Source: Zootoca vivipara (taxonomy: Eukaryota). Taken from it: a stretch of 64,000 nt of DNA. The DNA lies in assembly GCF_963506605.1 (NCBI RefSeq), contig NC_083287.1:39370001-39434000 (forward strand), read 5' to 3'. The notes under the pieces are model-generated. The model had not been told where the DNA came from, ran no database searches, and saw only the letters and a list, made by a program, of their open reading frames with translations. Positions within the stretch are counted from its first letter, which is position 1. Each line of letters begins with the position of its first letter. Below are positions 30,101-36,100 of this stretch, one piece after another. The translations under genes and the position numbers were made by a program.

Positions 30101-33100
30101 TATGGTACTGTATGTGTGTTCAAATTACAATGGTTCTTGAGTAGCATCTTGTAAGGAATGACCAGTAAACCACTTCAAGAATAGGTAAGCAAAGATGAGC
30201 CAGTCTGTGGTATTATTACTTGGCTCACTGACAAGAAAGTAATCCCAGCCATCCAACAGTACTAAATTACCTGTAAGTCAACAGTAGCCAATGCGGTACC
30301 TTCTAGATGTTATAGACCCACCAACTCAAGTCAGAGTGGCCAATGGTCAGGGATGATGAAAATTGTAACCCACAACATATGTCAGGTACCACAATGGCTA
30401 TCCCTACACTAAGTCACGAGACTACAACTTTCACCATTCCTATCTGCTTAATCTGATAAGGGTTGATGGGAGTTGTAGTTCAGTATCATCTGGGCACCCA
30501 AGATTGAAGAACACTGTGATAGAAAAATAATGTAGTCAGATGGAATTTATTTGCAAATTCTACCCAAGTAAATTATTTCCTCTTATTCAAGGTAGCATTT
30601 CAATGCGTTCTATATTTCAATGTTAGTAACATATTTTGCGGTTAGGATGCAGATCCTTTGTGTCAAATCCAGTGAGCCATTTTTTAATCTAGCAGATTCA
30701 TAGCATGCAGTGATGCCCATTACCTGCAAACTCTGTAGCCATCCAGGAAAAAGCTGAGAAAGAAAGAGAGTCTTTTGTAAGCAACTGCTCACCTATGTGG
30801 GCTCCACTGTTGTGACCAGCACATTCAGCTTCCTCTGGATGAAGTGTAAAAGCATACAGAACAAAAGCCAAGAAATAAAGCAGAATAGTTAGATGCCCAG
30901 CCATGAATGCAAAAGAAGAGTTACTTAAAAATGACAACTGCAGAAAGCACAGCATAAAAAGCCTTCTATATGCCACTGCTTAAAAATAAATCACTGTGTT
31001 GTTCTGAAGTTGAGCAAGTGATTTTGGAGTACAGCAACATGCATATTTAACTTTTCACTGTTTTATTGCCTTATTCATGACAGAAAATAAAGAAGTGTTT
31101 TTAAAAGGTGTTCTATTTTATATTTTAATGTAGGATAAAAAATACAACAGCTGAAACACAAAGGTAAAGAAATCTACAAAGAATATCAGGAGTTTTTGTA
31201 TTTGGCTCAATGGATCAGACAAAAAGGGTATTTTTAATGAATATAACTTCTTAGGTAATGTCTAACAAAACACTTTACAGCTTTTTGGTGTGTGTGTGTG
31301 TGTGTGTGTGTGTGTGTGTGTGTGTGTGTGTGTGTGTAACCTATCTAAAGAAATCAATGAGCTGCAACTCTTTAAATATATGCTGCAAGTGAAAAGTCCC
31401 CCAAAGATTGACACCACAGCAGTAAAGCATCTGTTAAGTTGTGCTCCAAAAATTGCACCCCTAATGATTGGAAAAGATCCACTTTATTCAGTGCCAAAGT
31501 TTGAATTTAAGGATAATCTATTAGAGCTGTGCAATAGGACTGCCATCATCTTTAGCTCCACGGAAATGTCTTGTATTAACATATCTGCTTTGTTCAGTTA
31601 TGTTACTTTGCTAACATTCAGAGGTTTTAGCACACATTCACTCCTGTTCTGCATACTTGACCCATGTGCAGAAATAGGCAGATCTGTTGTGTTGGGCCCC
31701 CCAAAATTCCTGCTATGTGAGGAGAAGGAAAAATACAAAGGAAGAAACCACATCTGACAATGGGATAACACATGTGGATCCCTGTGCCTTACCCCACAGG
31801 AATCTTCATGCACACATGCCAGTACTGTGCTGTAGGAACTACGTGCAGAAAGCAACATGTTCACAAGTCTTCTGCTACCACGATTCTCAGGACTTGAACT
31901 ATTTAGCAACAACAAAGCAACTGGCTGTTATGACTACATATACTGCTATCTATATGGATTATTTTCTAATTGCTTCTAAGTCAGTGATGACCTAGAATAC
32001 TCAGTTTTTAAGCCATCTCTTGCAGCCCAGCAGGGAAACTTGTACATGTACCTTCAACTTCCTCTGAGAAGCGCAAAAGGAGAAAAAATAGGATGCAAAG
32101 TGATTACATGGACTGAAGACATAATGGAAGAATAAAAGGGGGGGGCACCTACCACACTCAACTGTTTCCTCAGCTTAGAACAGCCAAAAGACAAGCAGAC
32201 ATGATTTACATTATATTCAGCACATAATAAAATGGGAAAAACAGAGCTGAGTAATATAAAGAACAGGTTAAGAGCATATTTTGCAGAAGTATGATGCACT
32301 GCACGTTCAACATTTTGCTGCAAAAGCCTGTACCCCAATTTCTTTTATGGGAGTGGGAAATGAGGGAACCTCACTTTCAAAATGTGTAAGTTTTTTTTGG
32401 TGCATATGCAAATGCTATGTTCCCCTAACACTGTTTAAGAGACAGAAAGGTTTGCACCAGCCCTGGGATGAAAAAACAACACATTAACTAGTCATGTTCT
32501 GCTTAGCATCATAAGTAAGAGTCACTGGGTTTTCAACTGTAATTTTGAAATGGTTACACTCTTAAGTTGAACTTGTCTACAGGTTGTTGCTTTCATCCAG
32601 ACTTCCTCTAGCCCAGAACTTTCCAAACTTTTCATATCGGTGACACACTTTTTAGACATGCATCATTTTGTGATTCAGTTCTACTAGCAAACCAGAGGTT
32701 AAACTAACCCCTTATAAGAGCACAGGGAGCATTTGTGTGACACACCCACACATTGTCATGGCACACAGTTTGAAAAGCTGTCTGAGCCCGGAAGTAGGGA
32801 ACCTGGGGTTCTCCAGATGTTGCTGGACTCTGAATCCCATCAGCCCTAGCAAGTATGGCTAATGGTCATGAAGGATGGGAGCTGTAGTGGCCATAAAAAA
32901 CCTCATCGTCTTGCGAGGCAACCTCCGATCGCAAAACCTATTCGTATAGCGGAAAATTTGTCTTACAGGGCATTCGTCTAGCGAGGCACCACTGTACTTA
33001 AATGCATTCTTAAGAGGCAAAGGATTAATAATAGTTCATATATGTGCTCTTTACAACTGATACAATGTATTATGAGCAATACCATTACCTTCTCAGCCAA

Positions 33101-36100
33101 GAAAGCCAAAGATCTGCCAAATCCAAACACTTTGGATTGCACTGTTAAGACAGAATTAAATTATAGGCCCCTGCTAAATTTGTCATAGCCTGCCTTCTTT
33201 GAACCCAGGAAGAGCTTAGTTGCTTAGCTGAGAAAGAAATGAAGAAGAGGACAAATACTTACTAGGGAAGAAAATCTTCCTTCAGAATTTATTTTTTCAA
33301 TGAGGATAAATTTTCCCACCTGAACTATTAAGGCTGGTTTGCATCTATGAAGTGAGCAGTGTGTGAGCTCTGTTAACACAAAACTTGGCCAGATCATTAT
33401 CATGAAAGCCCCTCGCATTCAAAAGGAAACACCAGATTTCCATTGGCATGCTTGAACCCCTTTGGAGGCTACATGAACAAGAAAGCTTCCCGCATGGAGC
33501 AAAATCCATGACGTTGCATTATTATTAGTCACCAATGTGGGTAACTGCTACTTTGATGTGAACCAAAGTATCCAACATTTCAGTTCCATAACGTTGCCTA
33601 CTTAAATTTGGCATGAATTATAAATTCTGTTCACCATTTCAGTTCTTAGATATCAAGCCCTTATACAGCTAAAACAGCACAAAACAGAGATTGGGGGGGG
33701 GGGGGTTAATGGGAAGAAATAGCCAAGAAACTCCAAAACAGCACACTGGAGACTGAGCATGCTCAATGAGCATTATGATGTTAATGATTATCAGTCACTT
33801 TCTATTGAAAATCTCAAAGCAACTTGAAAAGATTAAAATAAAATAAAATAAACAGTAGATTTTAAAACAATATACAATACAAAAATACTAAAATGTGACT
33901 GAACAAAAATCTTGGCTGGCTGGGGGTGGATGAAAAAAGGCTGTGTACATGTGTGTATTGAACAGGAGCATGCCACAATGCAAATAATAATAACTGGGTT
34001 CCACTTCCTTATATATTTCTCTAAGATGGAAAGGGAAGTTTGGTTAGACTGGATAAAGAAAAAATTAAGCATGCAAAAGAAAAGGAACTGACCAAAAAAC
34101 TGGGCTGATGAAGTAACACAAATTACTTGAATGTAAATTGGAACACAACTGATGGCTTTATCTCAAGGATCTGTTTCATTATTAGTTGAACATGCAACTG
34201 CTTTGCGACAAGGTTCTAAATGTTTGCCATTTGCTATGCACAACAGATGCATGACTCTATCCAGTATATTTGGGGGAAAGCAGGAACCACGCAGTTCAGT
34301 CACTTGCCTGCATCACAATGCACAGCAGCTCCGTTTTATAAATGAGCATCAATTGACAAACTCTCATAAGCAGGATCACAAAGATTTTTGCAGAAGTATA
34401 AAAATCTTAAGGTATAAAATTGAATTTCCTAGCCAGACAGAAAATATTTAACAAAATTTGTACATAAAAAGATTTGTGTGAGAAAGTATAAAAACAAAAA
34501 ATGCTAATATATTTTTAAATGGATAACTTTTAGGCAAAAATACTGAAATTCATCAAATGCACTCTTCTGTTTGATGACACAGCAAACTCCAAAGATGAAG
34601 CCTGTGTTAATGCCGTCACCATAGCAGCAAGTGACCCAAGACAAGATGACACTGACTATGTATATAATTTAGGACTGCAAATAATCATAAAAAGTAAGGT
34701 CAAAGTCTGCTGGAAGACTCCTCACCAGATGTCAGGAAGAATACTAGGTTTGAAAGAACAGTGAAGATGTGCTTGGCTTCCTGACAAAACAGATAGTGGT
34801 ATAAGGAGTTCCTTGCTTTTCTTACACAGAGTGAACACAGTGTAGAATTTGACAAAATGAGTTTTACTTTCAGTGTTTGGGCGCCACATAAAATTTGAAT
34901 CGTGCACAATTAATTCTCAAAATAATAAAATAGGTTGCATCTTGCTTGAATGCACACCATACTAAATCACATGATATTGATATTGAACTATATAAATGTT
35001 TGACAGTGATTAAATATTTCTTCTCTCACACTTAGTGAAAATTTCAAAAAGTACATAATTCAGTTCATATTTAATATCAAAATTACTCTTTTATTTTGGT
35101 TATACACTTACTAGGTCTTTCAGAGATTAACCACCCTATCCATTACACCATGCTAATTATGGATTAAAAATATTAAATTATTATTAGTCATATGAATGAG
35201 AACACATGTGATACAGCTTAAATATAAAAGCAAACTACCATGGTTCTGTTGGAAAGAAGTTGTTTTCGCCAGTATTAGTTTAACTGATTTTAATTACTGA
35301 TGGTTCATGCTCTCTTTTGAAGACATATGACATCAAATGAATGACAAGTTTAAGGACATGTGTGTAAGTTACACCATATAACAAATGCCACCAATTTCAT
35401 GCAAACGTAGTCCAGTGCTATCCTATGTCAGAAATAGAGCCAGTTCACAAATATAAATAACTGCTTCTCCATGCTCCTGACCTGCAACACACACACACAC
35501 ACAATTCCATGCAACCATTTTATATTAATTTTCCAAAACCTCACAGAAAGTGGTTCATCAATTACGCCAACTTCAAGTACGCCAATAAAATGATTTGGTT
35601 TAGAGAACGTTACTGTCTGTGTTCTATAGAAGAATGAACTACTGTGTTTTTTAAAAACTAGAACCCTGAAACCTTCAAGCATGCTATTTTCAGTCCATGA
35701 TGATACTGTGCTTTCACATCATTTGCTTTTGATATAATTCTAATTAGGCACACAGAAAAAGTACTTGCTAGAATATTCTTGCTACATTTTAAAAGATATG
35801 CCTTAATGTTTTTGCATATTTTGGATCAAACCCACTTCTTATAAGTCCAATTCAGTTCTAATGAGAAAAGCAGACAGAAAATTTGATAAGCATGTAAGAG
35901 TGGTAATAGATCATATATCAGCATGTTATTTATTGGTATGTTCTAAAAACATACTCCAAAGCAGCTTCACACAACCTCCAGATATTGTTGGACTATGTTT
36001 CAAAAGTAGATGGTTAAGCCTGAAAAAAGCACTTACTTCACAGGTGTCCCCTTTGTGTAGTATTTATACCCAGTGAGTCATTAAGAATGCCCTTCCAATA

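Follow-up and report, generated by a model that had tools for sequence, protein, structure and literature searches.

MAGUK proteins such as DLG1/SAP97 (inserts I2 and I3) and CASK are known to have short cassette exons in the linker between SH3 and GUK, and variants of SAP97 and CASK have been described (PMC9307800, PMC8208546). The I3 insert of hDlg was reported to contain a protein 4.1 binding site and to affect targeting (PMC2133382). The HOOK inserts of DLG1 and CASK resemble that of MPP7 in being short cassette exons of the same linker but have no sequence relation to it. In the paralogue MPP3, a homologous 14-residue block, E-D-x-[DE]-C-x-G-[YH]-x-x-G-x-[YH]-[IL], was found directly before AG[LF]RRSF. 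Strigops habroptila MPP3 X2 (P0066) contained ..EDCDCEGYFNGQYI-AGLRRSF at the MPP7 insert position, in agreement with the first-pass annotation, which had pointed to an MPP3 insert at this place. The block was present in the full-length MPP3 forms listed, and one bird MPP3 model (P0080) was devoid of it; the MPP3 segment upstream of the block was not EETVEC-like, unlike that of MPP7.

Inserts of MPP7 itself were found between ..NRKS and GFRRSF in a survey of about 200 annotated MPP7 proteins, and their classes fit combinations of 21, 12, and 42 (39) nucleotides. They were present in sharks, ray-finned fishes, lungfish, amphibians, turtles, crocodilians, birds, and mammals. The 601-aa isoforms of birds, turtles, mammals, frogs, and the gecko Sphaerodactylus contained [YS]EETVEC, followed by EEI[EK], E[DE]AECAG..., and A-GFRRSF. 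Non-squamates also possessed a 589-aa form (Y-AECAG..), which probably uses an acceptor 3 nucleotides downstream and so avoids a stop at the junction; the same shift in the lizard would give TAA, and no isoform of the 589-aa type was seen among the squamate isoforms retrieved. The mouse RefSeq isoforms X5 and X6 contained NEETVEC, EEIK, and the long exon. A 21-nt Mpp7 microexon of the mouse is labelled NEURAL-UP in the supplement of PMC8395343, with islet inclusion of 0.13 and 0.40 in two strains; it matches the EETVEC exon in length only. In a literature search on MPP7 HOOK isoforms, nothing beyond one supplementary-table line and no paper on function was found.

The HOOK cluster is ancestral and already known from annotation. 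The view that the insert is an ancestral one was borne out by its presence from sharks to mammals among annotated MPP7 proteins, whereas calling the cluster hidden went too far. RefSeq lists the 21+42 form as isoform X1 of Podarcis muralis, P. raffonei, Anolis, Pogona, and Crotalus, and annotations from birds, turtles, mammals, frogs, and a gecko include the form with all three exons; the RefSeq X-models among these are predictions and not cloned cDNAs.

The window, i.e., the whole stretch of 64,000 nucleotides of Zootoca vivipara DNA that was analysed, contained the MPP7 coding region on the minus strand from 63130 to 11985. In a tblastn search with the Podarcis muralis X1 protein (P0124), collinear matches were found along residues 1–597, as in an MPP7 orthologue with its full set of coding exons and the domain order L27-L27-PDZ-SH3-HOOK-GUK. 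The precomputed Pfam domains of the matched MPP7 proteins were L27, PDZ, SH3, and Guanylate_kin. At all seven diagnostic MPP7 residues, the window matched Zootoca vivipara X1/X3 and no other lacertid tested. The site of the HOOK insert, a phase-1 junction between ..NRKS and GFRRSF, was found between exons 10 and 11. The exons and candidate segments of this region, all on the minus strand, are as follows.

36302–36366, minus strand: MPP7 coding exon 10, 65 nt, peptide identical to that of Zootoca and Podarcis MPP7
34726–34743, minus strand: earlier-proposed 18-nt candidate (L-FFLTS), acceptor ag, donor gtgagg, generic AG/GT signals only
32153–32173, minus strand: conserved 21-nt microexon (EETVEC), peptide identical to that of Podarcis muralis X1 (P0124)
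32052–32063, minus strand: 12-nt microexon (EEVE), orthologue of the vertebrate EEIE/EEIK microexon
30793–30834, minus strand: conserved 42-nt alternative HOOK exon (14-residue peptide), identical to that of Podarcis X1/X2/X5
30724–30753, minus strand: lacertid 30-nt alternative exon (FSWMATEFA), acceptor ..ctttctcag, donor gtaatg
24218–24388, minus strand: MPP7 coding exon 11, 171 nt, basic HOOK motif and start of the GUK part

We consider it likely, with a probability of about 85%, that the cluster in intron 10 consists of the 21-, 12-, and 42-nt exons together with the lacertid 30-nt exon. The lizard intron would then hold a set of alternative cassette exons, ancient in vertebrates, that lengthens the HOOK linker between SH3 and GUK. 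Podarcis muralis MPP7 X1 (XP_028607220.1, UniProt A0A670J7G2; 597 aa) carried its insert at the same position as the window, and in the X1 models of P. muralis and P. raffonei, SEETVEC and the 14 following residues were identical to the peptides of the 21- and 42-nt exons of the window. The exon order and phase of the 601-aa isoforms were the same as in the window. The first residue of the insert was S instead of Y in squamates, and the 12-nt exon read EEVE in the window as against EEIE or EEIK in the 601-aa isoforms. The X1 models of Podarcis, Anolis, Pogona, and Crotalus were devoid of the 12-nt EEVE exon, whereas the window contained the EEVE segment.

Exon 10 ended with ..SNRKS and one T of a split codon, followed by the donor gtaagt. 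The 21-nt exon contained CT, EETVEC, and a final G, with the acceptor ..ttctaag and the donor gtaggt, and read S-EETVEC when joined to exon 10. The sequence [YS]EE[TA]VEC was kept from sharks to mammals among the annotated MPP7 proteins and was also found in the window; in Anolis X2 (583 aa), the 21-nt exon was the sole insert. This exon, which was absent from the list of the first-pass annotation, is the true first exon of the cluster. The 12-nt exon sat 89 nt downstream of it and contained AG, EVE, and a final G, reading E-EVE, with the borders ag and gtacat. The 42-nt exon had the borders ag and gtgagc and began with AG. Exon 11 contained CT, a 21-residue peptide, and a final G; a word search with this exon returned only short genomic ORF fragments running into introns, which were uninformative on splicing.

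Because the last base of exon 10 is T and both the 12-nt and the 42-nt exon start with AG, joining either of them directly to exon 10 makes a TAG stop, and in the lizard these two exons can yield protein only behind an exon ending in G. The 21-nt exon is the conserved G-ending exon of the cluster, and its final G allows the following exon to begin with AG without a stop. The use of the 42-nt exon directly after exon 10 was rejected for the lizard because the junction reads TAG. All exons of the cluster are in phase 1 and multiples of three nucleotides, so that several combinations keep the frame.

No insert: 576 aa
21-nt exon alone
21+42: 597-aa type
21+12+42: 601-aa type
30-nt exon alone: 586-aa type

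The inserts expected from these junctions would be SEETVEC and 14 residues (+63 nt) or, when EEVE is placed between these two parts, a longer version (+75 nt). Splicing of the exons of the cluster in Zootoca is inferred.

The 42-nt segment, which the first-pass annotation had proposed as an exon, proved to be a real alternative HOOK exon, with a peptide identical to that of the 597-aa Podarcis muralis X1. The pattern E[DE]AECAGxNSGxx[IL] was found in it, and the exon was conserved in every gnathostome group that was sampled as well as in MPP3. In models of Crotalus horridus (P0230) and Chloebia (P0041), the reading frame runs on through the intron sequence immediately upstream of this exon, and the Crotalus read-through peptide matched the window ORF at 30698–30976 over about 30 residues when compared by eye, which points to a strongly conserved flank, as around regulated exons. 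The peptide of the 30-nt exon was identical to that in the 586-, 584-, and 546-aa isoforms of Zootoca, Lacerta agilis, Podarcis muralis, and P. raffonei, which include the X1 isoforms of Zootoca, Lacerta, and Podarcis. The 30-nt exon lies 39 nt downstream of the donor of the 42-nt exon, a distance too short for an intron; the two exons should therefore be mutually exclusive.

The 18-, 12-, and 42-nt segments of the first-pass annotation were present in the window with the coordinates, AG/GT borders, phase 1, and translations given there. Intron 10 (11,913 nt) contained 470 multiple-of-3 segments of 6–51 nt that were bordered by AG and GT and open in phase 1, and 11 of the 470 had at least 70% pyrimidines upstream together with a decent donor. 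The splice signals of the three segments, taken alone, do not exceed chance. Orthology, as judged from the protein comparisons, raises the 12- and 42-nt segments above it and leaves the 18-nt segment with generic splice signals. The serial splicing of 18, 12, and 42 nt between exons 10 and 11, which had been proposed to give a 24-aa insert (+72 nt), is highly improbable. In its favour, the 18-nt segment is preceded by an AG acceptor behind a stretch of 75% pyrimidines, is followed by a good donor (gtgagg), and is in a compatible phase, and its final G would also avert the TAG at the following junction. Against this, the 11 segments of intron 10 match it in signal quality, and the phase role is already filled by the conserved 21-nt exon, which is the one that relatives use. 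LFFLTS, FFLTS, and LFFL had no counterpart among about 280 proteins retrieved, the exon was found in none of the isoforms retrieved from five lacertid species, and the hydrophobic hexapeptide differs from the acidic insert of every relative. A self-BLAST of the exon neighbourhoods showed no repeats in the window, which is neutral for the 18-nt candidate. As one of 11 comparable decoys with no protein counterpart, the 18-nt exon was rejected; the segment lies outside the HOOK cluster and is most likely a chance decoy, and the 24-aa insert that depends on it is not the expected product.

The 12-nt segment fared better, as it matches a conserved vertebrate microexon. The pattern of AG before E-E-[IVLMF]-[EK], with a last base G before GT, occurred once in the 64 kb on both strands, against an expectation of 0.0033 per shuffled strand. 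In its narrower form, E-E-[IVMF]-[EK] between the other two exons, it was found at 32063–32052. The peptide at this place in the three-exon isoforms was EEIE in 24 and EEIK in 20, followed by EDIE, EETK, EEMK, EEFE, and EEME, once each, and the annotation of the gecko Sphaerodactylus contained EEIE. There is a nearly even chance that EEVE is a true orthologue that has become a silent, unspliced relic in non-gecko squamates. Its donor, gtacat, is weak, and the exon was missing from every isoform retrieved for Podarcis (three species), Lacerta, Zootoca, Anolis (two species), Pogona, Crotalus, and the gecko Paroedura, whereas it is present in Sphaerodactylus, birds, turtles, and mammals; the exon may no longer be used in the lizard. 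Against a relic stand the intact AG and GT borders, reading frame, final G, and peptide (changed only from I to V), together with the best pyrimidine tract in intron 10 (90%), with a TGC near the acceptor at −12 to −10. Exons of 12 nt are, moreover, often overlooked by read aligners and annotation pipelines, which counts against a relic. We tentatively put forward, at somewhat less than an even chance, that EEVE is still spliced in lacertids, in an ordered chain from the 21-nt to the 12-nt to the 42-nt exon, where the stops at T/AG junctions tie the two later exons to the 21-nt exon and the lacertid-specific 30-nt exon is a mutually exclusive alternative.

A takeover by the 30-nt exon has also to be considered for Zootoca, with the ancestral 21- and 42-nt exons disused and the lacertid exon as the sole HOOK insert. 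All Zootoca and Lacerta isoforms retrieved were either of the 30-nt type or of the 576-aa type; the forms with 21-, 12-, or 42-nt exons were absent from the retrieved Zootoca models, and the 21+42 form also from those of Lacerta. The isoforms of Zootoca and Lacerta agilis thus carried the 30-nt insert or none, and a newer accession of Podarcis muralis X1 is also a 586-aa form. We regard this takeover as improbable, because the 21- and 42-nt exons keep their splice sites and frame intact and encode the same peptides as in Podarcis, two species of which have 21+42 models (X1, X2, and X5), and because the upstream intron flank is conserved even in a snake and a bird. The cluster of 21-, 12-, and 42-nt exons, with the 30-nt exon behind it, is the reading that we prefer.

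The sequence criterion of SRRM4-type microexons (27 nt or less, UGC near the 3′ splice site) held for the 21- and 12-nt exons, although this motif is of low specificity. The TGC lay at −24 to −22 upstream of the 21-nt exon, and both TGC positions were read by eye. Neural or endocrine cells may be the main site of microexon inclusion. The product would be an acidic, cysteine-containing insert, placed within a flexible linker immediately ahead of the basic HOOK motif. In an AlphaFold2 model of P0124 of poor quality (mean pLDDT 57.5), residues 285–379 had a pLDDT below 50 and the insert was without predicted structure. By analogy with the HOOK inserts of DLG1 and CASK, the insert may alter partner binding or the interplay between SH3 and GUK. 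The literature search revealed no partner that binds the MPP7 insert, and we know of none.

Our study corrects the exon model of this intron, with +63 or +75 nt instead of +72 nt and EETVEC instead of LFFLTS. The gaps in annotation are small: the retrieved Zootoca and Lacerta models are devoid of the 21/42-nt forms, and the retrieved models of non-gecko squamates are devoid of the 12-nt exon. The HOOK insert of MPP7 belongs to an ancient and widely annotated family of isoforms. For the MAGUK family, the interest lies in the junction stop that forces the order of the exons, in the spacing of only 39 nt between the 42-nt exon and the lacertid 30-nt exon that follows it, and in the role that an acidic, cysteine-bearing insert may have beside the basic HOOK motif.

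The coding region of MPP7, with 16 constitutive coding exons, was found to occupy about 51 kb of the minus strand (window 11985-63130), and the diagnostic MPP7 residues matched the Zootoca vivipara proteins at 7 of 7 positions and those of no other lacertid tested. Intron 10 and the exons that flank it contained the following features.

36366-36302, minus strand: MPP7 coding exon 10, ending in ..PLKVSNRKS plus a lone T; donor gtaagt
34743-34726, minus strand: 18-nt segment of the first-pass annotation, L-FFLTS
32173-32153, minus strand: 21-nt exon, ..ttctaag / CT GAG GAA ACA GTT GAG TGT G / gtaggt, encoding S-EETVEC
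32063-32052, minus strand: 12-nt segment, E-EVE
30834-30793, minus strand: 42-nt segment, AG/GT bounded, phase 1
30753-30724, minus strand: 30-nt exon (FSWMATEFA); acceptor ..ctttctcag, donor gtaatg
24388-24218, minus strand: MPP7 coding exon 11, starting CT GGT TTT AGG..

The first-pass annotation had proposed the 18-, 12- and 42-nt segments as a series of microexons encoding a 24-aa insert. All three were confirmed in the sequence, each flanked by AG on the upstream side and GT on the downstream side, a multiple of three in length and in phase 1. The 11,913 nucleotides of intron 10 contained 470 AG..GT segments of 6-51 nucleotides open in phase 1, of which 11 combined an acceptable donor with an upstream stretch of 70% or more pyrimidines; therefore nothing follows from the splice signals by themselves. 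By comparison with relatives, the 12- and 42-nt segments are real conserved exons, of which the 12-nt one may no longer be used in lacertids. The 18-nt segment was judged to be a decoy that arose by chance, and the 21-nt exon that actually comes first had been missed. The LFFLTS, FFLTS and LFFL peptides were found in no fetched protein, and none of the lacertid isoforms retrieved carried the 18-nt segment. LFFLTS was rejected as an exon peptide, being a hydrophobic hexapeptide unlike the acidic insert of any relative. Because eleven decoys of equal signal quality were present in the same intron and the segment had no counterpart, it is very improbable that it is a real exon.

The relatives were searched with exon 11 (56 aa) first and then with database proteins. 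The word search with exon 11 gave only genomic fragments reading into introns, and a search of representative proteins with the same query gave full-length proteins. Among these, MPP7 of Rhinophrynus (P0047) contained ..NRKS-YEETVEY-EDAEFDAHNTGTYL-AGFRRSF, mouse MPP7 X6 (P0050) contained ..NEETVEC-EEIK-DTGHDGNNSGTYI-AGFRRSF, and in the Chloebia protein (P0041) the insert block ran straight into AGFRRSF. Two word searches with the HOOK part only of P0047 and of Podarcis muralis isoform X1 (P0124) listed about 200 named MPP7 isoforms, and their inserts sorted into a few classes.

Classes of MPP7 insert among the listed isoforms (insert; protein length; where found)
No insert; 576 aa; many species
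[YS]EETVEC alone (21 nt); 583 aa; Anolis X2
21+12 nt; 587 aa; marsupials
Y-AECAG.. (39-nt version alone); 589 aa; many birds, turtles, mammals
21+42 nt; 597 aa; Podarcis, Anolis, Pogona, Crotalus, Paroedura, pig, gar, white shark
21+12+42 nt; 600/601 aa; birds, turtles, crocodile, mammals, frogs, Sphaerodactylus, catshark, paddlefish

Since these classes are spread from sharks to mammals, the cluster is ancestral to jawed vertebrates; the ancestral origin proposed earlier was thus borne out, with insert classes in sharks, fishes, frogs, turtles, birds and mammals. The likeness to MPP3, to which the first-pass annotation had pointed, was also borne out: where MPP7 has its insert, MPP3 of Strigops (P0066) contained the homologous ..EDCDCEGYFNGQYI-AGLRRSF. 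In MPP7 X1 of Marmota (P0149), Fukomys (P0157) and Pseudorca (P0205), six extra residues (DAVCAT, DAVCAK or DAVCGT) were observed between the 42-nt exon and AGFRRSF. These suggest that some mammals have an additional 18-nt exon beyond the 42-nt one, unrelated to the 18-nt segment at 34743-34726.

The peptide of the 42-nt exon was identical to that in isoforms X1, X2 and X5 of Podarcis muralis and P. raffonei, where the preceding residues were S-EETVEC. The 21-nt exon encoding these residues was absent from the first-pass list, yet it was picked up by a blind scan of intron 10. The 12-nt segment was found between the two, 89 nucleotides after the 21-nt exon and 1,217 nucleotides before the 42-nt exon, in the place where relatives carry EEIE/EEIK. 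The pattern E-E-[IVLMF]-[EK], preceded by AG and with its final G followed by GT, had a single match in the 64-kb window, both strands counted, with 0.0033 expected per shuffled strand. Its pyrimidine tract (90%, with TGC at -12..-10) was of the pattern expected of a regulated microexon, and its donor, gtacat, was weak. From its position and sequence, we take the segment as the orthologue of the vertebrate EEIE/EEIK microexon; no 12-nt exon was found in the retrieved isoforms of Podarcis, Lacerta, Zootoca, Anolis, Pogona, Crotalus and Paroedura. A GT/CA dinucleotide microsatellite was present between the 12- and 42-nt exons at about 31260-31420 (seen as CVCVCV and HTHTHT ORFs). For the species itself, three raw-read RNA runs (X21-X23) were found. 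The small runs X1-X12, which carry a different organism label (organism A) and are guessed to be RNA, contained 14-18% of the sampled words of the mostly intronic stretch 30700-36500.

The order of the exons was reflected in the junction codons. The final T of exon 10 forms TCT (S) with the CT of the 21-nt exon, and likewise with the 30-nt exon, but it forms the stop TAG with the AG of the 12- or 42-nt exon; the final G of the 21-nt exon forms GAG (E) with the AG of the next exon. Therefore neither the 12- nor the 42-nt exon would be productive in this lizard unless preceded by an exon whose last base is G, and the conserved exon of that kind is the 21-nt one. Judged from the protein sequences, the 589-aa form of birds, turtles and mammals would escape the stop by an acceptor 3 nucleotides further on. 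The same shift in the window would give TAA, without an AG in front, and no isoform of the Y-AECAG type was seen among the retrieved squamate isoforms.

The models of Crotalus horridus (P0230) and Chloebia (P0041) read through the intron immediately upstream of the 42-nt exon. Compared by eye only, the Crotalus peptide was identical to a stretch of about 30 residues of the window ORF 30698-30976, and the Chloebia peptide was similar to it. Such conservation of the intron flank is consistent with a regulated alternative exon.

A 586-aa form with the 30-nt exon was annotated in Zootoca, Lacerta agilis, Podarcis muralis and P. raffonei, and among the fetched proteins this insert was found only in lacertids. 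Between the donor of the 42-nt exon and the acceptor of the 30-nt exon there are only 39 nucleotides, less than an intron needs, and therefore the two exons should exclude each other. The spacer is open in the frame shared with both exons (ORF 30698-30976), so reading through it as one exon of 111 nt would preserve the frame too; none of the retrieved isoforms was of this type. The Zootoca isoforms retrieved (X1, 586; X2, 584; X3, 576 aa) contained none of the 21-, 12- and 42-nt exons, which are unannotated relative to these models. In the sister genus Podarcis the 21- and 42-nt exons are annotated, and their peptides are identical to those of the window. The isoform is already in the public annotation of many vertebrates, this genus included.

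The literature search yielded no paper on what the MPP7 insert does. A mouse study (PMC8395343) labels a 21-nt Mpp7 microexon NEURAL-UP and gives inclusion values of 0.13 and 0.40 for the islets of two strains; it may correspond to the EETVEC exon, whose length it shares. The MPP7 insert sits in the HOOK linker, immediately ahead of the basic motif. The AlphaFold2 model of P0124, poor overall (mean pLDDT 57.5), gave pLDDT below 50 for residues 285-379 and no predicted structure for the insert. The I3 HOOK insert of hDlg is reported to contain a protein 4.1 site and to affect targeting (PMC2133382), and SAP97 and CASK variants have been described (PMC9307800, PMC8208546). By analogy with the HOOK inserts of other MAGUKs, which modify the binding of partners, we infer that the MPP7 insert may do so as well.
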